Shown here: piece after piece, positions 1,843 through 28,196 of the stretch
How the letters are laid out: the number at the start of each line of letters is the position of its first letter
Position numbering within the stretch: the first letter of the stretch is position 1
Position numbers and translations under genes: made by a program
Notes under the pieces: generated by a model
What the model was told of the DNA's origin: nothing
Database searches by the model: none
What the model saw: the letters and a program-made list of their open reading frames with translations, nothing else
Origin: Macrostomum lignano
Taxonomy: Eukaryota
NCBI GenBank assembly: GCA_002269645.1
Contig: NIVC01001144.1
Coordinates: forward strand, 1 to 32,737
DNA length: 32,737 bases
Direction of reading: 5' to 3'

Positions 1843-2160
1843 GAGGTTGCCGCCTAGTGGTTAGAGAGTCGGACTCGCGCGACTTGAAGGTCGGCGGTTC
1901 GATTCCCTATCCCATTAGAACAATATGTGTGCTTGAGCAAGACAATTAACTCTGCATTGCTTTAGCTCACTCAGCTGTAAAATGGGTGCCAGCATTAGCT
2001 GGGGTAATTGAGGGTGTATGTGGCGCCCCCCCCCCCAGTCCTTGGACTGAACAGCCGTACGCAGCCTTCAGATGCGCCGCGCAATAGCTGCGGCTGGGCT
2101 GTCGGTTGATTGGGCCAGGTGTAATCAATTATTAATATTACTACTAATATTATTATTATT
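1843..2160 (+). mobile_element. tRNA-derived SINE
   Basis: A-box GCCTAGTGGTTAG (1852-1864) and B-box GGTTCGATTCC (1896-1906). Body GTGCTTGAGCAAGACA..CTCACTCAGCTGTAAAATGGGTGCCAGC resembles the conserved central domain of metazoan tRNA-SINEs. (ATT)n-type tail at ~2128-2160. No closed tRNA acceptor stem. Confidence 0.8.
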
Positions 2161-2253
2161 AGGGTGAATAAAAAAGGACAAAGACGAACGCCCTAGCTGT
2201 CAGTAGCTAATCGAAGACGAAAGCAAAAAACTAATACAACAAGGCAGTAGTCT

Positions 2254-5200
2254 CTAACCATCACCAGCAGCCAGCCGGATTTGCTCCTTGAGCGCACTAG
2301 TCAGTTCCAAGCTGAGCTGCATCAGGCGTCTGCAGTAGCCGCTGAGGTTGCCATACCGACCGTACTGTGCCGCCGTCAGCAGCGGCGCTGGGTCAAAGTG
2401 CATCGACAAATCGCACACCGGCTGCGCCTCGAGATTTTGGTCGCCGCCAAAGTGCAGCGAGCCGCTGATGATGCGCAACTCCGGCCAAACATCTTCGGCG
2501 TCGCTGCTCGACGGCGAAATTGACGAACAACCGACCGCTGACGCGTCACCAGGACAGTCAGCGACTTTGGCACCCGGTCGCTGATCACTACTTTGCCAGT
2601 GGTTGGATCTCGGACCAGATAGGGAAACTCTTCACCGTCTGGGAAAAGTTCCCGGTGCATGCTCGGGCGGACTGGTTCGCACGCGGCCAGGTTAATGTGC
2701 AAGTCCAGCTGCTCCAGGTAGCCGGCAGCTGCAGCTCTGCCGCTGGCATCAACTGTGCTCGGTCGTCCGCAGAATTCGGCTTCATTGGCGCACTTTTGTC
2801 TCTGATCGACACTGCTTGAAGATTTGTTGTTCGACGCTGCTTTTCTTTGGCGTCTGCCATCTTTCTTAGTCAACTCGCTGGGAGGCATTGCAGCTGCGGC
2901 ATCTACCACTTCACCACCGACACTCTGTCTGCTTGTTGCTGAGAATTCACTTTCAGGAGTCATCAAAGTGAAGTTTTTATTGGATTTCTTCTCATTCGAA
3001 AAAACGCGTCATTAGTGCTCAATGCATTCACTGCTGCACCTGAGCGTTCCGCGTCGCTTTTGGATTCTGCCAAGGATTCCACACTTTCCGTATCTATTTT
3101 AGCTTCCACTACGCCAGCTGCTTTTGGGCCGCGTTCTTGACCTCTTTGACCCCTCTGGTTGGTCTTAGCTGACGAGCCTTCGTTGCTAGTGCTGCAACCA
3201 GTTGCGACCTCGGTGAAAACTTCAGAGGAGGTTGCACCGTCGGTTGTGCTGACATTTGTAAGATTTTCAGTTCCGCTTTTGACTTTAATGCATGCACCAA
3301 TTTTCTTTCTTGATGTTCGATGTTTTAGTATACTCCAATCGATTTCTGGACATTTGCGCTGTTCGCAAGTAGTTTCCATGATTCCAGCGGTTGCAACAAC
3401 GCCTTTTGACTTCATTTGTGTCTTACCTTGTTTGCCTGCTAAATTGCTACAGGCGCTGTCATCCATCACATTGGTGCTCTGCCTCTGCTCTGTTAAGCCT
3501 GAGCTGACCGTTTGTGTTTCAGCGGCTCCCTGAGTTTCAATGAAATCGTCTCTTCTGTCCAAAGATTGAGTTGCATCCCGAGCAGATTGTTCCGCACCAG
3601 CGAGATAATACTCATCTCCATCTTTTTTATCGCCTTTGCGCTTGCGTTTGAATTTTCTATTCTTTTCTGTTTGTGCGAGTTCGATTTTTCTCGGCGCATT
3701 TTCCAATCCGATGGCTTCACTTGGACTTCCAGTTTCACAGTCAGCTGTGCTGGAGGCTGTAATCGCTGAGTTTCTCTCGCCAGGCCTATCAGAGTCTAAT
3801 AAATTCATGTAAATACAATTCAGCGGTCGCTCGTAGACTCGCACTAGCTGCAATGAAAGATCATGCTGCAGGTGAGCCTGATAGGAAGCGCTCAAGCGCA
3901 CGGACACCTTCCAGCCGGTCAGAGCCGGCTCTGTCTGTTTAGGAATTTCTACATAGCCTAATGATTTCAGGGCCTTCTCGTAGACTTCTACGGTTGCTCC
4001 GGTGCTAATTCGATGCAGATCCGCAACAATTCCAGCTAGAAAGCCAACGCCTAGTTTGTATTTCTTTCGACGGTTTGGCTTCGGAGCCCGTTCCGGTTTA
4101 AGCGGCGGATGAGGCTCTTGAGATGCGCCGCCAGGAGCCGCAAGACTAACCATTTTCTCTGCGCGATGCTTTCTAGTGGCATCGGAGGCATCGCGGCGAC
4201 GAAAGTCGGGTCGCTCGCAACCCTTGCGGAACTTCTTACCGGCCGCCAGTGCTACTGCCAGCTCAGCTAGAGATATGCTACGGCGGTTGTCAGGAAGACC
4301 GTTAGTTGCGTTTAGGAAATAAACTCGGCCAACGCGAACTGAAAGTTCCAGGTCTTTTAGCATTGCAGAAACTTGGCATTCAGACCTGATGATCGCAGGC
4401 GAGAAAACTGGCGACACATCAGAGCGAATAAGCGACGCGCGGCTTCATCTGTCCATGATGTAAAATCAATACCATCCGTCCCGAGACACAGCGGAACGCA
4501 AACATCATGCATTTGATGCTCAACATTCACTGAGCCAAGGTGATCAATTAGCTCGATCCGACAACTGTTTGAAAGACATCGAGTGGCCATGACGGTTCCA
4601 CCTCCCTCCAAAAAGTAGCGCAAACCGTTGTTGTACTTCCTCGTCCAGCTGCCAGACAAGCCAAATCTAGCAGACAGTTCGCGGAGTTCATGTCGAAGGC
4701 GATCGATAGCTGACGGGGCTCCGATTGCCCGTATCAGAAGTCGGCGCGATCCTGTGGTCTCTTCCAGTTGTACAGAATCACATCCGGTAGTCAAGCGCAA
4801 ACGTGTCTCGTGAAAGCGAAGGGATCGCAACATTTCAGTGCTTAAAATTCCGGGCAAACGCTGTGTCAGCCGAATGGCTTTTCCAGAGAGACTTGAAATA
4901 ATTGCGGCGGAAGACACAATGGACGCTGCGCTGTGGGTGTAGACGAGAACGCGAGAGGCAACGTCCGCAAGTTCCGCCACGCCTCTAACGACCTCAGCCG
5001 AAATCTGAACCGATGAAGCGGATTCAACTCTTTGCCACTTGTACGTCACGGCACCGGACAATTCACTGCAAAACCGAACAAAACGTAGTATGCAGCTGCC
5101 CAAAAAGGCAAAATTCGCATCCGAAGCTTTATCAGTCAGCCGGTCCATCAAAAAAGCTAGGCGCTCAGACAATGATAGATCAAGCAGACATTTATTACTT

Positions 5201-8200
5201 TCCTCGAAGTTGCTTGCGACTTCGTCGAACTCAGAAAAGCAATGCAGAACAAGAGCGTAAAACTCGGCTGTAGGCATCAGCCCCTGGCTCTCACTTGATG
5301 ACCGAACGATTCCAGCTGCCCTCGCCCACTGAACCAGCAGCCACAGCAAAGGTAGCCGCCACGGACAGCGACTGTACAAGCTGAGAAGGTAGCGCGTCTT
5401 TCCCAGACCTACACTGTTCATACTGATGTCGCACTCCTGGCCATCATCCACGTCCTCACCGCCGTCCAGTCCAAGACGGCATCGAATCAACGGAACTTGG
5501 CGATCGAGGTATCGAGTCTTTTCCAACACTGCAGCATCCAGTGAGGGCCACACAAGCGTCTCGAGCCAATGACGATGGCGAGCGCATTCTCCCAGTACAG
5601 AAACCTCTGCGGGAAGCCACGGCTCAGAGTACGCTTTATCAAGAGGTAGCACACACAAGTCGATGTCTGATGAAGCCTCATCACACACAAGAATCGAGGC
5701 TGAGCCATACACCTTGCAACTGAGCACTCCTGCACACTGCTGGGACAGGCGACCGCTGACCAGTGCGGCGGCTGCGTCGGCACGACCGACTGCATCGCGC
5801 AGACCCGGAAGAGATTTGCGGAAGAAGGCAAAGACCGAGCGACCGATCGACACTTCGAGACCTTCATCAATTGACTGCAGTGACGCGCTGCCGGTCTGCA
5901 GTACAGAGGTCGACATGCCGTGAGACCGAATTTCACACAAAACGTCGGTCACGACCCACGGGAAACTTAAACCTCGTGGCTTCTTCGCCTTCGAGGTCCC
6001 GACACTTTTGTACGCCACTGCAAACCATGCAGCTGCCTGAGCTCTGCGTTTGTTCTGGTCGTCCCCAGCAAGTTGATCGAATATTCGCCGGTACTTGTTG
6101 CCCAAAGCGTCAAACCCCTGCCGCATGGCTATGTGAGCGCGACCACGATCTGTTCGAAGCAGCGGGTGCCACTGAAAGCAGCGACCGAGCTGCAGCTCCC
6201 TGTCGCTTCTTGCGCCCCACTGCGACATCAGTGCCCGCAGATCAGAGCGGTAGAGCTCAAACAGCCGACTGGCGCTTTTCAAAAACTTCTCCTGACCGGC
6301 CCATGTCACATCGTACTCGTACTGTTGATTTTCTTGATCGATCGAGTCCAGCAGATCCCAATCCAGGTCGCAGGAGCGGCATCTTCGGTACAACTGACCC
6401 AGAAGCTTATCTGAAGGGTAGGAATCAGAGCGCTCCATGAAGTCTGGGTAGCCTTTCTCTTTAACGAATTTTACTGCTGCTTCAGGCACCTCCGGTACGA
6501 TTCCTGTCTTTGGAAAGTCGACTGCGACCGATTGAGCCTTTGCAACTTCGATCGCCAACTGGTTGAGGGCGCCACCAGGCAGCTGATCACAAATGGCCAG
6601 GTGCAAATTCGCTACTCGACCAAGAAAGCTGTTCGCAAAGTTCTGTGCGCAGAAGTTGGCCAGCAAGACTGGGTTCGTAACGTCAGCTCCTTCGGGTAGC
6701 TGTGGCTCGTTTGATGCCAGCTTCGCATAGTCCAGAGGTTCGTGGACTGCCTCTAGAGGCGGCACGAGCTCCGGGTCCCACACAACTCCAAACTGGTCTC
6801 CGTCGAGGTCACCGCCGCTGCAATCGGCAGCCAGTGAGCGGCGGCAGTCAGTGCGCGAAGGAAGCAGCAGCAGGTTAAGCCACCCACACAGCTGCGGTTT
6901 GGCCACGGCCTGCACCACTCGAACGTCTCCCGGATGCAGGCATGGGTTTCGATATATCAGCACTGGACCCTCAATCTGCTTAGCCTGATCACTGGGTTTC
7001 CGCTTGATTCGAAGAAACACCTGGCCCTCAGCCAGCACTTCTAGCGGATCAGGTGCGCCCATTACGCGACAACCGAGGTCGCCCACTGGCAGAGCAGCTC
7101 GCTTCTGCAGGTCGGACAGCCGAAATCGGAAAACGCATCGCAGCAGACCGAGCCAGTGCGGATCGGTCAGAAAGTTGAAGTGTCGCGCAGCTTCCACAAC
7201 ACTCGCTGTTGCCAAGCTCGGTTTGTCAATAAATTCTCGAAGTGCCGCGGTGGCTGCCGAAGGAGTCGCTAGAGACTCGGCTATTTTTCGCAGTTCCGCG
7301 TCGAGAATGTTTCGCAGACGTTGCGACGGGTTCCAGCTGTCACACTTGGAGGCCAGCGCCTCCAGCAGAGTGATGATCTCTCTGTTGAGGCAAAGTCTAC
7401 CGCACTGAGACGTTCCGACAATGCACAAGTTCGTGTCTGAGCTTTTGAACTTCACAGTGGATGGTCTCAGCGAGATTCCTTGCTGAAGCTCTAGCTTTGG
7501 GTCCGTATCGGAGACAGTGGTCAGGACTCCTTTGGCTCCACCAAAGCGAAATTGGAAGGCAAACGGTAGCTCTGGCAGGTCCAGTTTGGATTTAATTGAC
7601 ATAGCGAGTTCTGAGCTGATTTTCCCGCTTCCTGCAATGTGCGAATGCTTTGCGAGGTCAAAATTTGCTGTGCACAATGCACATTAAAGCTCATATACAT
7701 GCACGAACTGATACTCACCGTCCGTCAGAAGGTCGTCATTGAGAGCTCGATGGTCAATACATTTCGATACTTGGTTGGTCTCTAATTTGGCTACCCATGT
7801 GTCAGCTGTATGAAAAAGTCCCAGTCGAGACAGATATTTGGAAACCGATCGGAACTCTGTCGGATTCTCGACCAGCTGGTCTCGCAGTCGCTGCACTTCC
7901 TCGACAGACTCTGCGGCCACAAAGAAGCACCGGCTCGTTCGTAGCTGACCGCTGCTTGCCGAAAAAAACCGGTACATCCGTCCGGCCAGAGTCAGACCGT
8001 CCCGCAGCACTTTGGTGAATCGAGCACCGACTGAAGCAGCAGAGGCAACATTGACGCCGCCGCCTCGCACGACTCCGCATGACTCGTCGGTGAAGGCGAC
8101 CATCACGAGTCTTTCTGGAGGGATCCGACGCAGAAGGCGACTCGATGCTACGGGAGTGGCGGGGAACAATACCACTCTTGTTGGAGTCACAGCAACTCGC

Positions 8201-11200
8201 TTCACGAGCAGTGAGCCACATGCAACTGGCGGACCAACAGCAGCGTCTTCCGCATCCTCATCGGTCACCTCGAGAACACTAAGCGCAGAGTTCAGCCGGT
8301 CTCCAAGCACATCTTCAAAGAAGGCGTCGCCATCCCCAGTAGCCGACAACGTCAACAGTGCGTTGGCCAGTTTAATGAGGTTTGTTGGGCAGTCATTATC
8401 GAGTTCAGAGTCTGCTTGTGCAGCTGCTGCGATTCTATTTTCAATACCTGCAGCTGATTCTTGAGTGATGAGGAAGCGACGGCTGTCAATCAGAGCCTGC
8501 ATTTGCCAGCGGCACTGGAACTCTGCTTTGTCACGGACGGACAATTCCTGGAATGGCTTAACTCTATGACAGTATTCAAAGAGCGTCTCACTTTCCCCTG
8601 GGGAGGCATACTCTTCGGACTCAAGTCGGGTATCGAGCAGCGGCAGAGGAAACGTCGCACGGAGTCTCATCCAGTCGAGGGGCTCAGCTGATCGAGGGGC
8701 TCTTGGTAGATGCAGGATGAGTACAGAATTGGTTTCAAATTTCTGACGAATTTTTCCTGAAAGATCTTCAGTGTTGCAAAAGCTTTCAGAAGAAATCGGA
8801 TTGAAATCCCAGTCGTTTTGCTGATCCTCCTGTTCCACAGTTTTTAGAATAGTTGGCGCTACTGCCAAAGGTAAAGCAATCAATTCTTTGGACCAGTCCA
8901 CCATTGCAAACCCGTTAGTTCCACCAATGCTTGATACTACCAGTGAAACTCCAGCAGCACGAAAAAATACTGAAATGAGATTGCGATTAGAATCTATTTC
9001 TAATTCGATATTTTCTTCCGAAATATGCAACGCCTCAACTACTTTAGTTTTTGTCTGAAACTGGCCAATTGCAACGGAACTGAGAGTCTGAACTGTTCTT
9101 TCGGATTTTTTATGGAATCGTCGTCCGAATCTTCCACTTTTCGCACGTCTGGCATCGCATAAATTGGCTTATTGTTCAGTTCGAATGACCAACGACGCGC
9201 GAATTCGTGATAAATGCCAAGAGGAGAATCTAAAGTTGAGTGCGTTTCCAAGTACACGGCAGCGACTGTTGAGTCTCGTGGAAACAACCCAGAAGGCAAA
9301 GAATGATTCTCACACTGATCAAATAGCAAATCGATGGAGCGAACTTTAACGAAGTTTTCTTTCTCAATACTTAGCATTAAAGCTTCTTTATCACAGTCTT
9401 TCCTCTGCAACTCGGGGCAGCATAGCTGGACCATTATCTGGCCTCCCATTTTGCCTGTCAATCCCATTGAGTAGTGAGCTACAACAGATCGAGCAGCTTG
9501 CACAGGGCTCTTTCGTTCAGCCAAATGCTTTACCATTTGCCGCGTCAGCTCGGATGGAACCCCGTTTTCAAGCGAGTGATCGTCCACCACACGGTTCAGC
9601 ATATTTTCTCTTTCGCTCAAATCAGTTGCAGCGGCCGCTTCGTTTTCATCGACGACCATCAAGAACCGACTGTCCTTTTTGCGCGCCCGGCCGCGGCTCT
9701 GCAACAGCTGCACAAGCGACTTGGCTGCATCGAACCTGATAACAACGTCGCACGCGCTGACGTCGAGACCCTCTTCCAGCACTGCTGTGCTCACAATCAG
9801 ACGACTGCTGCCGTCATTGAAGCTGTCGATAGCCACTGACTGCTCGCCGTCCCAGTCCATGCCGTCTGCGCCACCACGTCCTACGACCAGCTGGGGCCTG
9901 AGGTTCGGGAAGAGCTCGGACAGGCGCGCGTGCAGCAGTCGGGCCGTTCGGCGAGTCCACGTCAGCACGAGAAGTCGAGACTCTTTGTTCTCGACCTGCA
10001 ACAGCGATGCGGCCTCGGCTTCGACCACCCGCATGCGCTCAGAAACATCCAGCTGCCAGTTTGGATCAGAGCGAAATCGCATGGTGGCTGTGGAAATGCA
10101 GCGAAGGTCGTCGAGAAAAGGGGCTGCCTTTGAGACGCCAACAAGTTGGGATGCTTCCATGGCGGCCAGGAGACACAGCAGGTCGCGAATCTCTTCTCGG
10201 TTGTTTCGAAATTGTGGCAGGCCGCTATAGATGAAGCCGCGCAGCTGACCAGCCAGCATGCGCAGCCGGTTGCTTGGCACAGGCATCGACTCTCGGATCG
10301 GTAGGCCAAGGTTCAGTTTTTCGTTGCTATCTGTTAAAAGTTTGCTAAGGTCCTCAGTGAATTGTATCTGCAGCGAGGACGGATGACAGAGCTTGGTCAC
10401 TGTTTGCACGGCCGACTCCTCTGCTTTTGCAGGTCGGAACGCAACGCAATCAGGAGAAAAAAATGATAAAAGACGACGCAGTTTCTTCTGTCCTTCGGAA
10501 TCGCCGTCTCCAGGTTCAACAGGCGATGCAGTCAAGCCTAGCAAACGAGGTCGCATATCCTCTGGCAGTTGGTGGTTCAGCTTAAGGACGCGCGGGAAGT
10601 TGTGCCGCGGGGAACTCGCGTGGTGGCACTCGTCGATTACAATGCATGAAAACGCGCTCAAGTCTGGAATTCGCCGATTAGTAATTAGGGAGAGCAGGGC
10701 GCCTGCCGTGATCACCACCTAAAACGATCCGGAAAAGCTTTTTTGTTAAGGAGAGACGAGACTTGGGTAAATAGTTAAAAATAACAAGATTGCTTACCAA
10801 ATCATGCGCTCCATCAAGAAGTTCTCGAATTTTCCAAGAGGTCATAATTTCTCCGCACAGCGCGGCCACTTTTAGCCCAGTGTCCGCCTCCAGCGCCTTG
10901 GCCTGCTGGAACACCAGCGGCACTCGCTCCACCAGCAGGGCCCCCATCCGTCCCGGGTTCAGAGCTCGCATCCGAGCCAGCAGCAGAGCTGCCACCAGCG
11001 TCTTGCCTGAGCCAGTGGGCAGCACCAGTACAAGATCTCGCTGAAGTGCCTCAACGAAAGCCTCCAGCTGGTAGGTCCGTGGCACTTTGTCCGATACAAG
11101 GAGGTCGGACCAGTCGAAGTGCTCAGGAGCAGAGGGCGAAGCGAACTGAACTGGGACTTGGCGAGCTATTAGACTGGACCAGTTGCCGAAATCAGGGACT

Positions 11201-11589
11201 ATTGATCTGCCATAGAAGGTGTCCATGTTCACCTCATCGATTTGTTTCTTTAGCCGTGGTATCAATTTCTGGGAAACTTTGTCGTTTGGCTCACATTGAA
11301 TCCCTCCAACAATGACTTTTTTCTTTCCTAATGAGATATAATTCGAACCATGCGGTCCGAATGGCAGCTGAACTCCAACACTGGCATTGCAAAATTGACA
11401 TCGTACTTCATCCTTTGCTCCTACCTTTTCAATGTACAAACTAGCCATTGCAGCTACTTTGAATTGGTTTTTCACTGATATATATACTTCATTCTTTGCT
11501 TTCCAGAAAAAGCAAACAAACTTTGCGGGGAGCAAACGTTTGCTACAATTTCCACAATCAACTCCTATGTTTCGATTTTTTGATGGCAT
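2254..11589 (-). CDS. Multidomain RNA-silencing protein: Zn module + Dicer/RLR-type helicase + RNA-dependent RNA polymerase + Cid1/TENT nucleotidyltransferase + KH-like + C-terminal domain (~3,057 aa after repair of four 1-nt frame breaks)
   Basis: Exons 11589-10798, 10718-7719 and 7631-2254. The GT-AG introns join HDL|VVITAG and LTDG|SGKIS in conserved motifs. The remaining ORF junctions (~9110, ~4370, ~3000, ~2518) are overlapping -1 shifts at short base runs. 9336-79-87+4=9174 nt=3058 codons including the stop. No in-frame nonsense codon otherwise. The N-terminus may extend via a splice acceptor at 11616. Confidence 0.85.
4680..4880 (-). other. KH-like segment
   Basis: LRFHETRLRLTTGCDSVQLEETTGSRRLLIRAIGAPSAIDRLRHELREL follows the KH pattern (helix-TG-strand-strand-G-helix) but lacks the GxxG loop. 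Confidence 0.35.
5150..5830 (-). other. Cid1/TENT (non-canonical poly(A)/poly(U) polymerase) family nucleotidyltransferase domain
   Basis: KVYGSASILVCDEASSDIDLCV (GS at 5701-5706, DID at 5659-5667), VPLIR, third Asp in ECDISMN (5428-5430), then TRYLLSLY..LPLLWLLVQWARAAGI..GLMPTAEFYALVLHCF. This matches the pol-beta-like TUTase/PAP signature, with all three catalytic Asp present. Confidence 0.85.
5930..9100 (-). other. Cellular (eukaryotic) RNA-dependent RNA polymerase domain with its N-terminal accessory region
   Basis: VAVTPTR, FTDE, YRFFSASSGQLR, KYLSRLGL, TDGSGKIS, FQFRFGGAKG, LNREIITLL, MGAPD, RNPCLHPGDVR, catalytic CSGGDLDGD (DLDGD at 6796-6810), AVDFPKTG, YPDFME, SDKLLGQLYR and LSFPW all occur in canonical order. 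Confidence 0.97.
7632..7718 (-). other. Intron 2 of the fusion gene (87 bp, phase 1)
   Basis: GTGAGT donor at 7718 and TTGCAG acceptor at 7632. Removal restores the RdRP motif LTDGSGKIS (family xTDGxGxIS). Confidence 0.92.
9560..11090 (-). other. SF2 Dicer/RIG-I-like DExD/H helicase domain
   Basis: Q motif PRTYQLEA; motif I LPTGSGKT (10999-11022); Ia VERVPLVFQQ; II DECH (10623-10634); III LGLTASP; IV LVLTWTR; V STAVLEEGLDVSACDVVIRFD; VI QSRGRAR (~9681-9701). Confidence 0.95.
10719..10797 (-). other. Intron 1 of the fusion gene (79 bp, phase 0)
   Basis: GTAAGC donor at 10797 and TTTTAG acceptor at 10719. Removal restores helicase sequence LDGAHDLVVITAG. Confidence 0.9.
11230..11565 (-). other. 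N-terminal putative Zn-binding domain (CxxC-x48-CxxC)
   Basis: DCGNC (C12, C15) and RCQFCNASVG (C64, C67). Spacing and the CxxCxxxVG motif recall the RIG-I CTD / Yippee-Mis18 / CULT fold. The fold assignment is inference. Confidence 0.45.
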
Positions 11590-11934: not shown

Positions 11935-12279
11935 CTAGCAATCTAGTGCCACCTTCAGGGCAACCAAGCAAAGAGCAAAAATGATTAACACAAATCCATT
12001 AAAAAACACAATTTCTTAAAAATAATTTCTTTCTTTGGTTTAATAAATCACCTTATTCAAGTAAAATTGACACAGATAAAGATGTTTGCTATGAATCTCT
12101 TTTTTCTAAAAGTAACAAAAGGACACAACAAAATAAAGCCTTCACAAAGATAGCAGGCATTTCCCTTAAAAAGAAAGTGTCTCCTAGACAGCAAGCATCC
12201 TTCCAAATAGTAAGCATCCCTTACATAGCAAGATCACTCAGCTAGCAAGCATCCTTCAAATAGTAAGCATATCCCAGAT
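11935..12279 (-). mobile_element. Degenerate inverted 3' fragment of the same Helitron family as 13877-24569
   Basis: The reverse complement reads ..AGATTGCTAG|T (end at 11935). 12093-12150 matches the subterminal GAAGGATTTTTGGCTGTCTTTTTGTTACTTTAGAAAACAGAGATTC, and 12150-12279 holds decayed TAGCAAGCATCC units (reverse of the 18-bp repeat). Confidence 0.7.
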
Positions 12280-14344
12280 TGAGTAATTGCTAAAATGGTA
12301 AGTTGGTTTACTTAAAGAGAGCAAGATAGTTAAAAGGCAAGGTGTTGCATAATCAAAATAAAGGCTTTAAAGTCAGTGAAAAACCCAACTTAGATCAGTT
12401 GGTCTGGCTGGCTAACTAAGTATACCCAACCCCCAACTAGGCAAGCTAGTAGTTAAACATGCAGGAATACCAATTATAGACTGACAGGCTACTACAATAT
12501 GCCATTTTATTGCCTGATTTTATGTAGATTTGTTTTTATTTTTGGTTATCTATTTACATAATATCACTTATATAACATAACTTATATTAGATATTTCAAC
12601 ATAATTTAAATGTGCTTTGTTGTGAATTATGACCATGTTGTAATAGTATGATAATCTTTGATATACTTAGCAATAGTCAAAAGTTCCACATGTACAAATC
12701 ACGCATAGTTAGTAAGAAACTTTTCATTTAAAATGCATGGTAAGAGGTGAATAGAAATATATTTGTTTGGTGGATAGAACTTTTGACTGTTGCTAGATAT
12801 ATATCTAGCAAGGGTGGGCAAATTTTTTCTACTTGAAGGCTAGATGAGGTTTTTAGTCTAAGACCACAGGCCACAGGGTGCACCCAGAAGGGGGGTAGGG
12901 AGTGGTTGCCCCCCTTAGGTGGAGACCTGAAGAAAATCAAAGGGAGAACCAAGTGTATTTTTGCCACAATACAGAGCCGCCCCCTCTACCCCCCCCCCTG
13001 GGGTCTTTACCCTCCAGAATTTTCCCCTCAACAAATTTCTGGAATATCTCAGAATATTTGATGCTGAGGAACCAGAATTAAAAAATATTTTATCATAATT
13101 TGATGCATTCTCAGAGAGTCCGATTCCACTGTACAGTCAGCCCTTTCAACGTACATATGTACCCCCGCTGTTGGCCAGCTCCACCACCCCACTTTCCTTT
13201 GCTGCCAGTTCCCCTATTTTTCTATTCTATTCGAAGTTTGAACTGATGTGCTGTCTGTCTAGACTTCGTAAACAGCCACTCACACTTAGTTCGTGTCTCT
13301 ATTATTCATTTGTCATTAAAATTGACAATTGAAGGAAGGAATTCCTTCACAAAGATACAAAGATATGACAGCTCTTAGAGTGCTTTTAGAGTTAATCCTA
13401 CTTTTAATTTTATGCTGAGGTATAGTTTTGCAACATATTTTCAGTTTATATCTTCTTTTTTTGATGTCTTTTAATTATGACAATACAATTACAATAAACA
13501 ATCCATGGCAGGCAAAGGCAGTTTTGGTAAAAACGAAAACTATTTCTTGTAAGCAAGGCAGTTTAAAAAGTTACAATTAAGTGCAAGTTAACAAAACGTG
13601 TCGTAAGTAAAACTTTTCTTAATATATCAAAGGCTGTAAAACTTCTTTTGTCATCAAAGTAGATTAGTTAAAGTCAAATTTATGAAAAATTAGCAAATGG
13701 TTTTTCTTTTTATTTACATTTAAAATTTTGGGATTCGCACTTGACGTGACCATCATGCACATATGCACGTCATGCGAAATCGCGTTGTGGATTGGCGACC
13801 AGTTGATCGCTCGCGCGCAATCCATTAACAGTACTTGCTCGCTTTCAGCAAATAATACCAATTTCTGTAAGCTTTATCCAATATACTAAAAATGAGTTGT
13901 CTGTCGGTATGCGATAGATTTCAGAAAAAATGGCTCAACCGATTTTCTTCAAACTTGCACCATTTGATCAGAAATTTTCCTGGGACGGTACATGCATCCT
14001 GGCTAAGAAATTGCTCAATGTTAAAGGGATTAAATATTCGAAAACATGCTTTTTTGCAAAGGTCAAGCAAAATTTTCGACTTGAAATGCATTGCAAGAAT
14101 GCTAGAGAAAAAACTGACTGGCTGAATTCCGATTGTGATAAAGATTGCATCACAGCAAGTTGAAAACAGTGTCGAAAAAATGCACACAAGACTTGATTGT
14201 AATTGCGTAACCATATTGCTAACTTGAATTGAGACTGATACTGGCTGACTGAGAAATTGATTATGTCATAACTTTTTACTCTAACTGACTTGCTATAAGA
14301 ATTGAATTATAATGGCCACAATTCATGTTCTTCAATTGAAAAGA

Positions 14345-14422: not shown

Positions 14423-14469
14423 ATTAAAACACCTTAAAAACAAAAAACTGCTAAACATAAAACAAGCGC

Positions 14470-17400
14470 TATGTCAAACATACAAGAGCCACCATGTCAA
14501 ACATAAAAGAGCCACCATTTCGAACGTAGAGTTACCATTAAGAACATTAAAGAGCCGCCATGTCGAACATTAAAAAGCCACCATGTCAAACATAAAACAG
14601 ACACCATTAAGAACATTAAAGAGCCACCATGTCGAAACATTAAAGAGCCACCATGTCAAACATAAAACAGACACCATTAAGAACATTAAAGAGCCACCAT
14701 GTCGAACATTAAAAAGCCACCATGTCAAACATTAAAGAGCCACCATTTCAAACCTAAAAGAGCCACCATGTCGAACATTAAAGAGCCACCATGTCAAACA
14801 TAAAAAAGCCACCATATCAAACATAAAAGAACTACCATGTCAAACATTAAAGAGCCACCATGTCGAACATTAAAGAGCCACCATGGCAAACATAAAACAG
14901 ACACCATTAAGAACATTAAAGAGCCACCATGTCGAACATTAAAGAGCCACCATGTCAAACATAAAACAGCCAACATTTCGAAAATTAAAGAGCTACCATG
15001 TCAAACATTAAAGAGCCACCATGTCAAACATTAAAGAGCCACAATGTCAAACCTAAAGGAGCCACCATGTCGAACATTAAAAAGCCACCATGTCAAACAT
15101 TAAAGAGCCACCATTTCAAACATAAAAGAGCAACCATGTCAAATATTAAAGAGCCACAAGGTCAAACATGAAAGTGCCACCATGTAAAACATTAAAGAGC
15201 CACCATGTCGAACATTAAAGAGCCACCGTGTCAAACATAAAACAGACACTATTTCGAACATTAAAGAGCCACCATGTCGAACATTAAAAAGCCACTATGT
15301 CAAACATTAAAGAGCCACCATGTCAAACCTAAAAGAGCCACCATGTCGAACATTAAAGAGCCATTATGTCGAACATAAAAAAGCGACCATATCAAACATA
15401 AAAGAACTACCATGTCAAACATTAAAGAGCCACCATGTCGAACATTAGAGAGCCACCATGTCGAACATGAGAGAGCCACCATGTCAAACATAAAACAGAC
15501 ACCGTTCAGAACATTAAAGAGCCACCACGTCGAACATTAAAGAGCCACCATGTCAAACATAAAACAGCCAACATTTCGAAAATTAAAGAGCCACTATGTC
15601 AAACATTAAAGAGCCACCATGTCGAACATTAAAGAGCCACCATGTCAAACATAAAACAGCCACTATGTCGAACATTAAAGAGCCGCCATGTCAAACATAA
15701 AACAGAGCCACCATTTCGAAAATTAAAGAGCCACCATGTCAAACATTAAAGAGCCACCATGTCGAACATTAAAGAGCCACCATGTCAAACATTAAAGAGC
15801 CACCATGTCTAACATTAAAGAACCACCATGTCGAACATTAAAGAGCCACCATGTCAAACATAAAACAGCCAACATTTCGAAAATTAAAGAGCCACCATGT
15901 CAAACATTAAAGAGCCACCATGTCGAACATTAGAGAGCCACCATGTCAAACATTAAAGAGCCACCATTTCAAACCTAAAAGAGCCACCATGTCGAACATT
16001 AAAAAGCCAACATGTCAAACATTAAAGAGCCACAATGTCAAACATTAAAGAGCCACCATGTCGAACATTAAAGAGCCACCATGTCAAACATAAAACAGAC
16101 ACCATTAAGAACATTAAAGAGCCACCATGTCGAACATTAAAGAGCCACCATGTCAACATAAAACAGCAAACATTTCAAAAAGTAAAGAGCCACTATGTCA
16201 AACATTAAAGAGCCACCATGTCAAACATTAAAGAGCCACCATGTCAAAAATAAAACAGACACCATTAAAAACATTAAAGAGCCACCATGTCGAACATTAA
16301 AGAGCCACCATGTCAAACATAAAACAGCAACTATGTCGAACATTAAAGAGCAACCATGTCAGACATAAAACAGAGCCACCATTTCGAAAATTAAAGAGCC
16401 ACCATGTCAAAAATTAAAGAGCCACCATGTCGAACATTAAGGAGCCACCATGTCAAAGATAAAAGAGCCAACATGTCAAACATTGAAGAGACCCCATGTC
16501 AAACAATAAAGAGCCACCATGTCGAACATAAAGAGGCACCATGTAAAACATATACGTAACTCCATGTCAAACATTGAAGCGACACCATGTCGAACATAAA
16601 AGAGCCACCATGTCAAACATTAAAGAGCCACCATGTCGAACATAAAAGAGCTTCCATGTCAAACATTAAAGAGCAACTATGTCAAACATAAAAGAGCCAT
16701 CATGTCAAACATATAAGTGACTTTATGTAAAACATTAAAGAGCTACCATATGTCAAACATATACGTGAATCCATAGTAGACATTAAAGAGCCACCATGTC
16801 GAACATTAAAGAGCCAACATGTTAAAAATACAAGAGCCACCATGTCGAACATTAAAGAGCTAACATGTTAAAAATACAAGAGCCACCATGTCAAACATAT
16901 ACATGACTCCATGTCAAACATTGAAGAGACACCATGTCGAACATAAAAGAGCCACCATGGCAAACATATACATGACTCTATGTCGAACAATCAAGAGCCA
17001 CCATGTCAAAAATATACATGACTCCATGTCAAACATTAAAGAGCCACCATGTCGAACATTTAAGAGCCACCAGGTCAAACATGATAGTGCCACCATGTAA
17101 AATATTAAAGAGCCACCATGTCAAATATTAAAGAGTCACCAGGTCAAATATATACATGACTCCATGTCAAACATTGAAGAGCCACCATGTCGAACATTAA
17201 AGAGCCACCATGTCTAACATAAAAGAGCCACCATGTCAAACATTAAAGGGCCACCATGTCAAACATAAAAAAGCCACCATGTCAAACATTAAAGAGCCAC
17301 CATGTCAAACATATATGTGACTCCATGTCAAACATATATGTAACTCCATGTCAAACAGTAAAGAGCCACCAGGTCAAACATATACATGACTCCATGTCAA

Positions 17401-17867
17401 ACATTAAAGAGCCGCAATGTCAAACATATATGTAACTCCATGTCAAACAGTAAAGAGCCACCAGGTCAAAAATATACATGACTCCATGTCAAACATTAAA
17501 GAGCCGCAATGTCAAACATAAAAGAGCCACCATGTCGAACATAAAAGAACCACCATGTCGAACATAAAGGAACCACCATGTCGAACACAAAAGAGCCACC
17601 ATGTCAAACATAAAACAGCCACTATGTCAAACATAGAAGAGCCACCATGTCAAACATTAAAGAGCCACAATGTCTAACATTATATAGCCACCATGTCAAA
17701 CATTAACGAGTCACCATGTCAAGTATATTCGTAACTCCATGTCAAACATCAAAGAGCTACCATGTCGAGCATTAAAGAGCCACCACGTAAAACATTAAAG
17801 AGCCACCATGTCAAACATAAAAGAGCCATCATGTCAAACATTAAAGAGCCATCATGTCAAACATAAA
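14470..17867. repeat. 23-bp minisatellite array (consensus ACATTAAAGAGCCACCATGTC[A/G]A), roughly 145-150 units
   Basis: Directly visible tandem units with variant classes (..ATAAAACAG.., ..ATATACATGACTCC.., ..ATGAAAGTGCC..). Confidence 0.97.
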
Positions 17868-18539
17868 TGTAGAAAAAATACTAAACTAAAAACTATTTAA
17901 TTGGAGTTAAATTGAAGGAGCAGGAGGAGCAGTAAGTGGGCGCAGGGCCCAAACCGATATATTTATGGAACATTTAACTTTGGGGGGTTAAGCCCAGAAT
18001 AATAGAGAGGGGGTGGAGTGCGCGACTGAGGAAAGAGGCGAGAACGGAGAGCCAATCAGAACGCAGCAAGGGAGAGAGAGATAAGAATAACAAGATTGAG
18101 CTAGACAGAGAGAGAGAAAACGGAGTAAACAGAGACAATTGAAGGTGAACTAAGAAATGACTAGGAAAGTCGCGACACTCCCCCAAAAAATGGAACATTT
18201 TTTGAATTTTTTGAATTTTCGAGTACCAATAGAATTATGAATTAGAGTTCAAGAAACAACTTTAAAAGCAAATTTAACAATGGTGCACAAATACGACTAA
18301 GAATTTCAATACAAAACCTGTGGAGACTAGAGTGAATGCAAATTTGACAAAGAAATTTCACGTGTGCGATTTTAATGAATAAATTGTTACAACCAAAAGA
18401 AAACTGACTACATTTACCTAGAACGCAGCAAGGGAGAGAGAGATAAGAATAACAAGATTGAGCTAGACAGAGAGAGAGAAAACGGAGTAAACAGAGACAA
18501 TTGAAGGTGAACTAAGAAATGACTAGGAAAGTCGCGACA
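17868..18539 (-). mobile_element. Internally deleted LTR retrotransposon inserted in the minisatellite
   Basis: TG..CA termini with a perfect 5-bp TSD ATAAA (17863-17867 and 18540-18544). Full 310-bp 3' LTR at 17868-18177, preceded on the minus strand by PPT GGGGGAG (18178-18184). The truncated 5' LTR (18420-18539) appears identical to 18058-18177 over 120 bp. Confidence 0.88.
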
Positions 18540-20475
18540 ATAAAAGAGCCACCATGTCAAACATTAAAGAGCCACCATGTCTAACATTAAAGAGTCACCA
18601 TGTCGAACATTAAAGAGCCACCATGTCAAACATTAAAGAGCCACCATGTCTAACATTAAAGAACCACCATGTCGAACATTAAAGAGCCACCATGTCAAAC
18701 ATAAAACAGCCAACATTTCGAAAATTAAAAAGCCACCATGTCAAACATAAAACAGCCACCATTTCGAAAATTAAAGAGCCACTATTTCAAACATTAAAGA
18801 GCCACCTTGTCAAAAATTAAAGAGCCACCATGTCGAACATTAAAGAGCCACCTTATCAAACATTAAAGAGCCACCATGTCGAACATAAAAGAGCCACCAT
18901 GTAGAACATAAAATAGTCACTATTACAAACATGAAAGTGCCACCATGTAAAACATTAAAGAGCCACCATGTCAAACATTAAAGAGCCACCAGGTCAAGCA
19001 TATACATGACTCCATGTCAAACATTGAAGAGCCACCATGTCGAACATAAAAGGGCCACCATGTCAAATATTAAAGAGCCACCATGTCGAACATTAAAGAG
19101 CCACCAGGTCAAACATGAAAGTGCCACCATGTCAAATATTTAAGAGCCACCATGTCGAACATTTAAGAACCACCATGCCAAACATAAAATAGCCACCATG
19201 TGAAACATATGCGTGACTCCATGTAAAACATTAAAGAGCTACCATATCAGACATATACATGACTCCATGTCAAACATATACGTGACTCAATGTTAGACAT
19301 TAAAGAGCCACCATGTCGAACATTAAAGAGCTAACATGTTAAAAATACAAGAGCCACCATGTCAAACATATACATGACTCCATGTCAAACATTGAAGAGA
19401 CACCATGTCTAACATTAAAGAGCCACCATGTCAAACATTCAAGAGCCACCATGTCTAACATTAAAGAGCCACCATGTCAAACATAAAACAGCCACCATTT
19501 CGAAAATTAAAGAGCCACTATTTCAAACATTAAAGAGCCACCTTGTCAAAAATTAAAGAGCCACCATGTCGAACATTAAAGAGCCACCTTATCAAACATT
19601 AAAGAGCCACCATGTCGAACATAAAAGAGCCACCATGTAGAACATAAAATAGTCACTATTACAAACATGAAAGTGCCACCATGTAAAACATTAAAGAGCC
19701 ACCATGTCAAACATTAAAGAGCCACCAGGTCAAGCATATACATGACTCCATGTCAAACATTGAAGAGCCACCATGTCGAACATAAAAGGGCCATTATGTC
19801 AAATATTAAAGAGCCACCATGTCGAACATTAAAGAGCCACCAGGTCAAACATGAAAGTGCCACCATGTCAAATATTTAAGAGCCACCATGTCGAACATTT
19901 AAGAACCACCATGCCAAACATAAAATAGCCACCATGTGAAACATATGCGTGACTCCATGTAAAACATTAAAGAGCCACCATGTCAAACATAAAACAGCCA
20001 CCATTTCGAAAATTAAGGAGCCACCATTTCGAAAATTAAAGAGCCGCCATGTTAAACATTAAAGGGCCACCTTGCCAAATATTAAAGAGCCAATATTTCA
20101 AACCTAAAGGAGCCTCATGTCGAACATAAAAGAGCCACCATATCGAACATAAAAGAGTCACCATGTTAAAAATTAAAGAGCCACCATGTCGAACATTAAA
20201 GAGCCACCATGTCAAACAAAAAAGCCACCATTTCAAACATAAAAGAGCTAACATGAAGAACATTAAAGAGCCACCATGTCGACCATTAAAAGAGCCACTA
20301 TGTCGAACATACAAGAGCCACCATGTCGAACATAGAAAAGCCACCATGTCAAACATAGAAAAGCCACCATGGCAAACATTAAAGAGCCACCATGTCGAAC
20401 ATTAAAGAGCCACCATGTCGAACATAAAAGAGCCACCATATCAAACATAAAAGAGCCACCATGTCAAACATTCAA
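18540..20475. repeat. 23-bp minisatellite array, continuation after the LTR insertion (~84 units)
   Basis: Same unit as 14470-17867. Contains a ~500-bp internal duplication with a 736-bp offset. Confidence 0.97.
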
Positions 20476-20575
20476 GATATACAATTTCAAATGTAAAGGT
20501 ATAAAGCGCCATGCCAATTTAAAGGAGCCACTATAAAGCCAAGGAAATTGTCGCTCTAGCTACTTATTGTCTGGT

Positions 20576-20980
20576 GGATGGTTGCTATTTGGGGATGCTA
20601 TCTATCTGGGGAATGCTTGCTATTTGGAGGATGCTTGCTTTCTGGGGATGCTTGCTATCTGGGCGATGCTTGCAATTTGGGGGCAGCTTGCTATTTGAGG
20701 GATGCTTGCTATCTGGTGGATGCTTGCTATCTGAGGGATGCTTGCTATCTGAGTGATGCTTGCTATCTGGGGGATGCTTGCTATCTGAGGGATGCTTGCT
20801 ATCTGAGGGATGCTTGCTATTTGGGGTATGCTTGCTATCTGAGGGATGCTTGCTATCTTGGGGATGCTTGCTATCTGGGGGATGCTTGCTATCTGGGGAA
20901 TGCTTGCTATCTGGGGAATGCTTGCTATCTGGGGGAATGCTTGCTATCTGGAGGATGCTTGCTTTCTGGGGGATGCTTGT
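20576..20980. repeat. 18-bp minisatellite (GGGGGATGCTTGCTATCT), ~22 units
   Basis: Tandem units visible; they explain the spurious GDACYL/GGCLLS ORFs. Confidence 0.97.
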
Positions 20981-21604
20981 GGTCTTGGGAAGATTTCTTA
21001 TTGCAATTCACTTCATTTGAGCAGTTTGTCTGTTGTCTTTGTGAAGGATTTTTTGGCTGTCTTTTTGTTAATTGTAGAGAACAGAGATTCTATCCAGATG
21101 TCCCCCATCGGGGGGCGAAGATTGCTAGTCCTATATACTAAAAATGAAATGTCTGTAACTAACTAGCTATGCGATAGATTTCAGAAAAAATGGCTCAACC
21201 GATTTTCTTCAAACTTGCACCATTCGATCAGAAATGTTCCTGGGACGGTACATGTATCTTGGCTAAGAAATTGCTCAATGTTAAAGGGATTAAATATTCG
21301 AAAAACATGCTTTTTTGCAAAGGTCAAGCCAAATTTTTGACTTGAAATGCATTGTAAGAATGCTAGAGAAAAAACTGACTGGCTGAATTACGATTGTGAT
21401 AAAGATTGCATCACAACAAGGTGAAAACAGTGCCACAGAAACGCACACAAGACTTCATTGAAATTGCGTAACCATATTGCTAACTTGAATTGAGACTGAT
21501 ACTGGCTGACTGAGAAATTGATTATGTCATAACTTTTTACTCTTACCGACTTGCTATAAGTATTGAATTATAGGGGCCACAAGTCATGTTCTCCAATTGA
21601 AAAG

Positions 21605-21683
21605 AGATAGCCGGATGCAAACAGACTGGAATGCTAATGTAGCGACCTTGGTTCGAATCTTAGTGGTGAAAAATGTTTTTTTT
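21605..21683 (+). other. Degenerate tRNA-like Pol III unit inside Helitron copy 2
   Basis: Homologous to 14345-14422. B-box GTTCGAATC at 21651-21659 and T8 run at 21676-21683. Confidence 0.45.
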
Positions 21684-21714
21684 ATTAAAACACGTTAAAA
21701 AACACAAAATTCTC

Positions 21715-23890
21715 AACATTAAAGAGCCACCATGTCGAAACATTAAAGAGCCACCATTTCAAACATTAAAGAGCCACAATGTCAAACATTAAAGAGCCAC
21801 CATGTCGAACATAAAAGAGCCACCATATCAAACATACAAGAGTTACCATTTCAAACCTAAAAGAGCCACCATGTCGAACATTAAAAAGCCACCATGTCAA
21901 ACATTAAAGAGCCGCCAGGTCAAACATAAAACAGACACCATTAAGAACATTAAAGAGCCACCATGTCGAACATTAAAGAGCCACCATGTCAAACATAAAA
22001 CAGCCACCATTTCGAAAATTAAAGAGCCACCATTTTAAACATTAAAGAGCCACCTTGTCAAATATTAAAGAGCCACAATGTCAAACATTAAAGAGCCACC
22101 TTATCAAACATTAAAGAGCCACCATGTCAAACATTAAAGAGCCACCATGTAAAACATTAAAGAGCCACCATGTCGAACATAAAAGAGGTACCATGTCAAA
22201 CATTAAAGACCCACCAGGTCAAACATGAAAGTGCCACCATGTCAAATATTAAAAAGCCACCATGTCAAACATTAAAGAGCCACCAGGTCAAACATGAAAG
22301 TGCCACCAGGTCAAACATATACATGACTCCATGTCAAACATTAAAGAGCCACCATGTCGAACATAAAAGGGCCACCATGTCAAATATTAAAGAGCCACCA
22401 TGTCAAACATTAAAGAGCCACCAGGTCAAACATGAAAGTGCCACCATGTAAAACATTAAAGAGCCACCATGTCAAACATTAAAGAGCCACCAGGTCAAAC
22501 ATATACATGACTCCATGTCAAACATTAAAGAGCCACCATGTCGAACATAAAAGGGCCACCATGTCAAATATTAAAGAGCCACCATGTCAAACATTAAAGA
22601 GCCACCAGGTCAAACATGAAAGTGCCACCATGTAAAACATTAAAGAGCCACCATGTCGAACATTTAAGAAGCACCATGTCAAACATAAAATAGCCACCAT
22701 GTGAAACATATAGGTGACTCCATGTAAAACATTAAAGAGCTACCATACCAGACATATACATGACTCCATGTCAAACATATACGTGACTCCATGTTAGACA
22801 TTTAAGAGCCACCATGTCGAACATTAAAGAGCCAACGTGTTAAAAATACAAGAGCCACCAGGTCAAACATATATATGACTCCATGTCAAACATTAAAGAG
22901 CCACCATGTCGAACATAAAAGGGCCACCATGTCAAATATTAAAGAGCCACCATGTCAAACATTTAAGAGCCACCATGTCAAACATATACATGACTCTATG
23001 TCAAACGTTAAAGAGACACCATGTCAAACATTACAGAGCCACCATGTCAAACATTTAAGAGCCACCAGGTCAAACATGAAAGTGCCACCATGTAAAACAT
23101 TAAAGAGCCACCATGTCAAACATATACGTAACTCCATGTCAAACATTGAAGAGACCCCATGTCAAACATTAAAGAGCCACCACGTCGAACATAAAAGAGC
23201 CACCATGTAAAACATATACGTAACTCCATGTCAAACATTGAAGCGACACCATGTCGAGCATAAAAGAGCCACCATGTCGAACATTAAAGAGCCACCATGT
23301 CGAACATAAAAGAGCTACCATGTCAAACATTAAAGAGCCACCATGTTAAACATAAAAGAGCCATCATGTCAAACATATAAGTGACTTTATGTCGAACATT
23401 AAAGAGCCACCATGTCTAACATTAAAGAGCCACCATGTCCAACATTAAAGAGCCACCATGTCAAAAATTAAAGAGCCACCATGTCTATCATTAAAGAGCC
23501 ATCATGTCAAACATTAAAGAGCTACTTTGTCTAACATTAAAGAGCCACCATGTCAAACATTAAAGAGCTACTTTGTCTAACATTAAAGAGCCACCATGTC
23601 AAACATTAAAGAGCCATCATGCCAAACATTAAAGAGCCACCATGTCAAACATAAAAGAGCCACCTTTTTGAACATTAAAAAGCCACTTTGTAAAACATAG
23701 AAGAGCCCCCATGTCAAACATAGAAGAGCCCCATGTCAAACATAGAAGAGCCCCCATGTCAAACATAGAAGAGCCCCCAAGTCAAACATAGAAGAGCCAC
23801 TATGTCAGACATTGAAAAGCCACCGTATCAAACATAAAAGAGTTACCATGTACGAGCGTAGAACATAAAAGAGCCACCCTGTTAAACATA
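21715..23890. repeat. 23-bp minisatellite array in Helitron copy 2 (~95 units)
   Basis: Same consensus and variant classes as in copy 1. Confidence 0.97.
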
Positions 23891-23983
23891 AAAAGATACA
23901 CAATTTCAAACGTAAAAGTAAGCGAATTTTAAAGGAGCCGCTATAATGCTAAGGAAATTGTCGCACTAGCTACTTATTGTCTG

Positions 23984-24430
23984 GTGGATGCTTGCTATTT
24001 GGGGATGCTATCTATCTTGGGGATGCTTGCTATCTGGGGGATGCTTGCTATCTGGGGGATGCTTGCTATCTGGGGATGCTTGCTATCTGGGGGATGCTTG
24101 CTATCTGGGGGATGCTTGCTATCTGGGGGATGCTTGCTATCTGGGGGATGCTTGCTATCTGGGGGATGCTTGCTATCTGAGGGATGCTTGCTTTCTGGGG
24201 GATGCTTGCTATCTGGGGGATGCTTGCTATCTGGGGGATGCTTGCTATCTGGGGGATGCTTGCTATCTGGGGGATGCTTGCTATCTGAGGGATGCTTGCT
24301 ATCTTGGGGATGCTTGCTATCTGGGGGATGCTTGCAATCTGGGGGATGCTTGCTATCTGGGGGATGCTTGCCATCTTGGGGATGCTTGCTATCTAGGGAT
24401 GCTTGCTATCTGGGGGATGCTTGCAGTCTG
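23984..24430. repeat. 18-bp minisatellite in Helitron copy 2 (~25 units, more homogeneous than in copy 1)
   Basis: Tandem GGGGGATGCTTGCTATCT units. Confidence 0.97.
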
Positions 24431-25936: not shown

Positions 25937-25942
25937 TTTATT
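25937..25942 (-). promoter_or_regulatory. Polyadenylation signal AATAAA of CAP gene 1
   Basis: Minus-strand AATAAA about 30 nt after the TAA stop at 25972-25974. Confidence 0.55.
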
Positions 25943-25971
25943 TAAATGTAAGTTTTTACTTTCCATTAGGC

Positions 25972-28120: not shown

Positions 28121-28196
28121 GTTGTACCTGGGAAGTTGCTTGCTTGAGCCAGTTGGTCTGTGTGAGTTGGTTTTCGGTGTGCGATTTTCTGCGTTA

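Follow-up and report, generated by a model that had tools for sequence, protein, structure and literature searches.

A predicted single-chain fusion of a Dicer/RIG-I-like helicase, an RNA-dependent RNA polymerase and a terminal nucleotidyltransferase in Macrostomum lignano

RNA-dependent RNA polymerases (RdRPs), nucleotidyltransferases (NTases) and helicases cooperate in the RNA-directed RNA polymerase complexes (RDRCs) of Schizosaccharomyces pombe and Tetrahymena and in Caenorhabditis elegans, where RRF-1 and EGO-1 act with DRH-3 and RDE-3. Fusions of a helicase and an RdRP in one protein are known from Dictyostelium, peronosporomycete oomycetes, Hydra and Nematostella, and their helicases form a clade separate from that of Dicer (PMC4791657); such fusions have also been published in PMC3661229. 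The Dictyostelium fusion RrpC is needed for the 5′ spreading of small interfering RNAs (siRNAs) and for silencing of the retrotransposon DIRS-1 (PMC3661229, PMC3950715). RdRP genes have been reported in some free-living flatworms, Macrostomum included (PMC8191739). Here we describe a locus of the flatworm Macrostomum lignano that appears to encode a helicase, an RdRP and an NTase in a single chain. The window analysed is the whole of contig NIVC01001144.1 (32,737 nucleotides; assembly GCA_002269645.1), and the locus occupies positions 2254–11589 of its minus strand. A preliminary description had assigned the three modules and their motifs to this region, which our Pfam matches and motif positions confirm, and had stated that Dictyostelium RdRPs carry an N-terminal Dicer-like helicase, in agreement with the published fusions (PMC4791657, PMC3661229).

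The three enzymatic modules and the gene model

The superfamily 2 (SF2) helicase core (Hel1, inserted domain and Hel2) lies at 9684–11082 on the minus strand, as do all parts of the gene described below. It was matched by the Pfam families DEAD, ResIII and Helicase_C, with DEAD/ResIII divided between the first two open reading frames (ORFs) and Helicase_C in the second. Motif I (PTGSGKT) is at 11019–10999, motif II (DECHH) at 10634–10620 and motif VI (QSRGRAR) at 9701–9681. The best relatives in the PDB were AncD1D2, a reconstructed ancestral Dicer helicase (3.5e-39), and Arabidopsis DCL1 (8e-38). LGP2 was matched at 2.5e-29 in a single alignment (171–627 to 4–490), so that the inserted Hel2i region is covered as well. 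Further relatives were RIG-I, MDA5 and Dicer-2, while FANCM and Hef matched more weakly. Because the closest solved structures are those of Dicer and RIG-I-like receptors (RLRs), aligned through the inserted domain, the predicted helicase belongs to the Dicer/RLR clade, whose members are activated by duplex RNA. These relatives and the three motifs bear out the earlier label of an RLR/Dicer-type helicase.

The cellular RdRP domain (PF05183) extends over 6382–8190, with the catalytic DLDGD at 6810–6796 and a head region reaching to about 5960 (LSFPW). Positions 1–165 of PF05183 are found in the third ORF (E 1.4e-18) and positions 165–581 in the fourth (E 7.8e-91), split solely by intron 2. Among PDB entries the core resembles plant RDR2 (1.8e-55) and QDE-1 (1e-11). 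From its sequence, the RdRP is of the cellular (eukaryotic) type with a complete catalytic DxDGD loop and is predicted to be a polymerase; the full-length PF05183 match together with DLDGD confirms the preliminary assignment.

The third module, a Cid1/GLD-2-type terminal NTase made up of a palm and a central domain, was located at 5104–5823 by profile, AF2 model and catalytic residues. Its motifs are YGSAS (5709–5695), SDIDL with the DxD signature (5670–5656) and CDISMN with the third aspartate (5433–5416). We aligned the 538 residues following the RdRP with 15 homologue segments (16 sequences, alignment A1), the beginning of which is still matched by RDR2 residues 1094–1122. G99, S100, S111, D112 and D114 are invariant in this alignment and D191 is nearly so; G-S, DxD and a third carboxylate form the standard catalytic set of polymerase-beta-type enzymes. 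A PDB search with the single sequence of the NTase region gave no match, and the family profile was needed: the A1 profile matched GLD-2 (6.2e-13, with the alignment reaching residue 271), Cid1 (2.7e-9), TbTUT4 (4e-9) and CutA (1e-8), and also MEAT1, Tailor, URT1 and Trf4. All 16 family members matched PF22600 (MTPAP-like_central) at E<=0.1, homologues reaching 43 bits. The AF2 model of the region (mean pLDDT 75.7; 80–94 across most of residues 50–360) is two-lobed, with a palm and a central/PAP-associated domain. In a Foldseek search of the PDB its top 49 matches were all Cid1-family enzymes, among them CutA (7.7e-7) as well as TbTUT4, Cid1, TUT1, TUT7, mtPAP, RET1 and Tailor, with target-normalised TM scores of about 0.5–0.58. 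Family profile, fold and invariant catalytic residues thus back the Cid1/TENT-type label given before, and classing the module as a Cid1/GLD-2-type terminal nucleotidyltransferase with predicted tailing activity appears sound.

The whole coding region runs over ~9.3 kb from an ATG at 11589 to a TAG at 2256–2254, both ends matching those of the homologous family, and is interrupted by two introns and, at four places, by a frame break of one base. It is visible on the minus strand as a chain of long ORFs (11589–10678, 10718–9039, 9030–7684, 7677–4357, 4417–2963 and 2966–2376). The ORF 7677–4357 is unbroken and contains the catalytic part of the RdRP as well as the NTase, as had been noticed before. 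Gene structure was tested with a profile hidden Markov model (HMM) built from 35 full-length homologues and compared with the three minus-strand frames. An initial model with a GT-AG intron at every ORF junction was overturned by this comparison, in which the family HMM aligned collinearly from 11562 to 3782 across the junctions. The corrected model, with two introns removed and four bases inserted, comprises 3057 codons with zero internal stops, corresponding to a conceptual product of 3057 aa. It gave the best family-HMM score (1932 bits), the rejected intron models scoring 18–33 bits below.

Intron 1 (10797–10719, 79 nt, GTAAGC...TTTTAG, GC content 0.34) splits the DEAD domain, and the family HMM continues through it without a gap at position 259. 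Intron 2 (7718–7632, 87 nt, GTGAGT...TTGCAG, phase 1) joins LLTDG to SGKISS; it is supported by the family consensus TDGaGKIS and by HMM position 1194, matched on both sides. A 51-nt version of intron 2 with an alternative acceptor scored 19 bits lower against the family profile.

Frame break 1 lies at the helicase-to-RdRP junction (9102–9123), where one base is apparently missing, most likely from the A6 run at 9112–9107. HMM position 773 lies at 9123 in frame 2 and position 774 at 9102 in frame 1, whereas a 92-nt intron at 9061–8970 would cost 33 bits. The TAG at 9039, which the preliminary description named as a possible transcript end between helicase and RdRP, falls in the abandoned frame and is irrelevant to the fusion; the break itself is the one-base slip between 9123 and 9102. 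DEAD, Helicase_C and RdRP stand in this order at the locus, their join requiring one added base. At frame break 2 (4369–4387), between the NTase/KH-like region and the conserved C-terminal domain, one base again appears to be missing: the HMM match runs to position 2260 at 4387 in frame 1 and resumes with position 2262 at 4369 in frame 0, and across the break LKDLELSVRVG aligns with LEVTVRVG of a second Macrostomum protein. A 47-nt intron at 4385–4339 costs 18 bits, and both breaks leave too little space for any intron. The junction that had been assumed at 4300–4500 is hence a frame slip at 4387–4369 and not an intron. Frame break 3 (2966–3007) is situated in a low-complexity stretch, and stops in two frames bound the switch; either one base is missing from the T6 run at 3004–2999 or a 101-nt GT-AG intron is present at 3039–2939. 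At frame break 4, near the C-terminus (2500–2570), a base is apparently missing as well, our best guess being the T3 run at 2519–2517. The frame that follows encodes DLSMHF (2412–2395), matching Macrostomum DLSLHF in the tail alignment (E 7e-6). The four breaks all shift the frame alike, each being one base short, and two of them are at the A6 and T6 runs.

A widespread family of fusion proteins

The order of domains in the corrected product is a four-cysteine zinc domain, the Dicer/RLR-type helicase, the RdRP, the Cid1/GLD-2-type NTase, a KH-like module and a conserved C-terminal domain. When the whole product was used as query, 57 proteins with both helicase and RdRP domains were recovered; approximately 46 of them (2277–3411 aa) are of a longer form that also shows RdRP_head and/or MTPAP-like domains. 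Hosts among the animals are Macrostomum lignano, Hydra vulgaris, Acropora millepora, Dendronephthya, Stylophora, Desmophyllum and the sponge Oopsacas minuta; the others include the dinoflagellates Effrenium and Prorocentrum, the oomycetes Pythium and Globisporangium and the green algae Bryopsis and Mesotaenium. Annotations of these homologues are limited to 'RdRP 1-like' or 'uncharacterized'. The closest relative, Macrostomum lignano BOX15_Mlig000965g3 (P0001), shares 39% identity over 86% of the query, compared with 30–33% for the dinoflagellate proteins. The corrected product aligned with P0001 in one piece (10–2546 to 1–2662, 38.8% identity), and the C-terminal tail aligned in addition (E 7e-6). 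Hydra vulgaris LOC105846434 (P0004) matched with E 1.5e-278 and keeps the order DEAD, Helicase_C, RdRP.

When 1.84 billion cluster representatives were scanned in full by HMMER with the profile of the NTase region, 1646 matched at E<=1e-3, of which 258 reached E<=1e-10 and 102 reached E<=1e-30; in full-length matches the region falls at about residues 1700–2300 of 2300–2900. The homologue P0003 (2357 aa) is encoded by a single unbroken 7074-nt ORF on an 8138-nt contig. This argues that the triple fusion is not an artefact of gene prediction, and at the level of the family the predicted fusion is genuine.

The check by domain architecture suggested in the preliminary description found dozens of full-length homologues with the same order, all uncharacterised. 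The supposed novelty of the three-enzyme fusion did not hold, as many RefSeq/GenBank proteins carry all three domains and helicase-RdRP fusions have been published. We found no paper analysing the triple fusion, mention of which was confined to a figure legend, one review likely to cover it being outside the literature covered, and PMC4791657, PMC3661229 and PMC3950715, which treat helicase-RdRP fusions, make no mention of an NTase. A PAP nucleotidyltransferase domain is drawn in two amoebozoan RdRPs, from a set also drawn with helicases (bioRxiv 10.1101/2023.10.19.562841, Extended Data Fig. 10). Judged by sequence, the locus is a further member of an existing, partly described and widespread family of uncharacterised proteins.

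Further domains and surroundings of the gene

At the very start of the family stands a zinc domain of ~100 residues (here 11290–11562), with CGNC at 11556–11545 and CQFC at 11400–11389, which we assign to the RIG-I-CTD / Yippee-Mis18 (Mss4-like) type (CTD, C-terminal domain). Its four cysteines are invariant in 20 members (alignment A2). When these members were scanned singly, Pfam RIG-I_C-RD was matched by 13 (best 5.6e-8) and Yippee-Mis18 by 15. The profile of the domain matched the CTD of a Dicer-related helicase (DRH) in the PDB (6m6r, 0.0047), LGP2 (0.49) and also MsrB, Mis18 and Yippee, which presumably share one zinc-binding fold (Mss4-like). No RLR-type zinc domain follows the helicase; the related four-cysteine domain precedes it. 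Since this domain is N-terminal rather than behind the helicase, the product is not an RLR in architecture.

Behind the NTase, the AF2 model shows a β-α-α-β-β-α arrangement at residues 376–448 (DSSP), which we tentatively describe as a KH-like module (4657–4875). Matches were weak, with E 0.016–0.06 for the KH domain of hnRNP K (profile) and a Pfam KH_1 match in one of 16 members at 0.056; no GXXG loop is evident in the family consensus of the module.

The conserved C-terminal domain (3782–4369; HMM positions 2262–2446, E 1.2e-26; alignment A3) is characterized by the motifs L-x-x-x-R-x-G-x-x-Y and ERPL-x-W. Its profile gave only chance-level matches in the PDB and no relative was detected there; the AF2 model (pLDDT 49.9) was unusable. 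A low-complexity insert of ~250 residues, rich in K, S and T, separates this domain from the conserved tail (3041–3781) and is absent from shorter family members such as that of Hydra. The family-wide N-terminal RIG-I-CTD-like domain, the tentative KH-like module and the conserved C-terminal domain appear to be new.

Opposite the RdRP/NTase region, a 225-aa ORF on the plus strand (5763–6440) has no Pfam match; it is rich in R and P, as is typical of ORFs arising by chance on the strand opposite GC-rich coding sequence. Elsewhere in the window, a ~9.4-kb tandem array (14453–23851) consists of more than 300 copies of a 23-nt unit, with the consensus AACATTAAAGAGCCACCATGTCA, in three blocks with ~80% matches. 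This satellite has a strong skew of A over T, and the repetitive ORFs to which it gives rise on either strand are spurious. An 18-nt unit, TCTGGGGGATGCTTGCTA, forms two arrays of 23–25 copies within the satellite and at its end (20570–20979 and 23980–24432), and a few loose copies of the core of this unit, GGATGCTTGCTA, occur at about 12170–12300, directly upstream of the RdRP gene. A very AT-rich trough (25001–26000, GC 0.24) separates the satellite from two CAP-domain genes on the minus strand. The one at 27502–28333 is an apparently intact two-exon CAP / cysteine-rich secretory protein gene, whose first exon may encode a signal-peptide-like stretch and whose second exon matched Pfam CAP with E 5.4e-7. 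The second paralogue (32212–32718) is about 45–49% identical, and its exon changes frame three times or more while the conserved cysteines are kept; either the duplicate is decaying or the assembly is locally rich in errors here.

Proposed role and comparison with known systems

By comparison with Dictyostelium RrpC and with the RdRP complexes known from S. pombe, Tetrahymena and C. elegans, we infer that the protein is a covalent single-chain version of such RNA-silencing complexes. The enzyme would be recruited to a target RNA, which the RdRP would copy into a complementary strand or double-stranded RNA. Using ATP, the helicase might translocate on the duplex or clear it and thereby let copying spread along the template. 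The NTase would extend the 3′ end of either the template or the product by untemplated nucleotides, while the zinc and KH-like domains could hold the RNA ends. The products would then feed Dicer and Argonaute and silence transposons or viruses. Provided that the gene is functional, such siRNA amplification has, in our estimate and by analogy, a somewhat better than even chance of describing its action. Taken together with this role, it is probable that the region represents one nuclear protein-coding gene, in a genome with AT-rich intergenic DNA, whose product of ~3050 aa belongs to a conserved eukaryotic family.

Several observations weigh against this reading. The role as siRNA amplifier is drawn from likeness, for this gene and its triple-fusion homologues alike. 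The NTase of the locus itself matches PF22600 below the curated cut-off (E 0.0013–0.0018; 18.8–19.3 bits vs 27), a Pfam scan of its own N-terminal domain alone gave no match, and the KH assignment after the NTase is marginal. Furthermore, the frame is broken four times, and two of the breaks are outside long homopolymers. The four deletions might be real and the locus the relic of a once-functional fusion gene, inactivated recently, a real possibility though hardly the expected one. Four frame breaks within 9.2 kb would fit such a history, as would the absence of any gene model matching the locus in our protein database search; decaying copies do seem to occur in the region, where the nearby CAP-domain paralogue (32510–32212) has at least three frame switches. 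We did not take the switches of this paralogue as proof of assembly error either, because they are ambiguous: three breaks in 300 nt are far denser than those of the fusion gene, and the other CAP copy is intact. Set against decay, 3057 codons are free of in-frame stops once the frame is corrected, which counters a very young pseudogene weakly, and all catalytic motifs are intact. The lesions are also uniform, and one missing base, twice in A6 or T6 runs, is the typical signature of long-read assembly errors. With four identical one-base losses, two in homopolymers, and every motif intact, the breaks are more likely to be residual assembly deletions than true mutations.

It is very unlikely that the locus is divided into two or more genes, with the TAG at 9039 closing a helicase gene and an independent RdRP-NTase gene behind it. 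The ORF 9039–10718 does stop at this TAG and the next listed ORF begins at 9030, but the downstream frame is open and homologous already from 9102 and the family profile passes from position 773 to 774 across 9123/9102 without a gap. Moreover, neither a start-codon context nor a promoter-sized spacer is present between the parts, and the homologues listed all join helicase and RdRP in one chain, including the one encoded by a single ORF on its contig. An insertion of foreign origin, by horizontal transfer from a protist or by misassembly, is even less probable. It is suggested by the GC content, which is ~0.53 over 2000–11000 compared with 0.35–0.39 (0.37) in the flanks and changes in a sharp step at both gene ends, and by the existence of dinoflagellate homologues. 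The GC content at third codon positions (GC3), however, is 0.46–0.58 and resembles the values for exons of the CAP-domain genes elsewhere in the window (0.52–0.67), and the introns of the gene are AT-rich like the flanks. The step thus points to a long, nearly intron-free coding stretch and not to foreign origin; horizontal transfer inferred from it was rejected on the match of GC3 with other coding exons. In sequence identity an animal protein (39%) comes closest, ahead of the dinoflagellate proteins. No direct or inverted repeats were found flanking the gene, and on this ground an origin as a mobile element was ruled out. Finally, the protein could be real without being an siRNA amplifier. 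It might act as an RLR-like sensor or effector for foreign RNA, or as a surveillance enzyme whose NTase marks RNAs for decay, RdRP activity being secondary. The helicase is equally near to RIG-I, MDA5, LGP2 and Dicer, the family has a RIG-I-CTD-like domain, enzymes of the Cid1 family often act in decay, and animal RdRPs do not always make siRNAs (PMC6396948). On the other hand, every RdRP catalytic residue is retained and the only helicase-RdRP fusion relatives that have been studied act in RNA interference (RNAi) (PMC3661229, PMC3950715), so that we consider a sensor or surveillance role unlikely and favour siRNA amplification.

The value of the finding lies in a large uncharacterised family that spans several eukaryotic supergroups. 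The locus itself extends the patchy record of animal RdRP genes by one lineage and otherwise offers little beyond another member. Rather doubtfully, the family may be an ancient single-chain RdRP complex of animals, alveolates, stramenopiles, green algae and probably Amoebozoa, with a RIG-I-CTD-like zinc domain for RNA-end binding at its N-terminus. This conserved domain bears on the origin of RLRs: if it is truly homologous to the CTD of RLRs and DRHs, the pairing of helicase and CTD would predate animals and would have served RdRP-based silencing first, and RLRs would descend from an RNAi-amplification module. The fusion is also 'Rosetta stone' evidence that helicase, RdRP and tailing enzyme work on the same RNA, a link for which experiments in fission yeast, Tetrahymena and nematodes have already given proof. 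A natural RDRC in one polypeptide would be convenient for structural work on the coupling of tailing, unwinding and copying, suiting cryo-EM and in vitro reconstitution.

The database relatives (Macrostomum P0001, Hydra P0004, Acropora LOC114966061/2, Oopsacas, Effrenium voratum, Prorocentrum cordatum, Pythium oligandrum, Bryopsis and Mesotaenium; 2277–3411 aa) have the same domain order as the product described here and likewise share the N-terminal four-cysteine domain, the NTase catalytic residues and the C-terminal domain. The locus differs from them by its four frame breaks and by a longer low-complexity insert ahead of the C-terminal tail. RrpA, RrpB and RrpC of Dictyostelium discoideum and the RDRs of oomycetes, Hydra and Nematostella are alike in having an N-terminal Dicer-like helicase fused to the RdRP. 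These have been published as two-domain proteins in which NTase, zinc and C-terminal modules are undescribed, and we liken them to the present family by architecture. In the RDRCs of S. pombe (Rdp1, Hrr1, Cid12) and Tetrahymena (Rdr1 with Rdn1/Rdn2) the same three activities are present, but as separate subunits, and Hrr1 is a helicase of a different type from the Dicer/RLR clade. The likeness to both complexes is one of functional analogy and not of membership. In C. elegans RRF-1/EGO-1, DRH-3 and RDE-3/MUT-2 are separate proteins as well, with RdRP and tailing enzyme driving secondary siRNAs. The analogy to these three systems, which had already been drawn in the preliminary description, seems apt at the level of inferred function. 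DRH-3 comes closest in one respect, as a Dicer-related RLR-type helicase with a CTD, and the N-terminal profile of the family matches the DRH CTD structure; in DRH-3 and RLRs this domain follows the helicase, whereas in the fusion family it precedes it.

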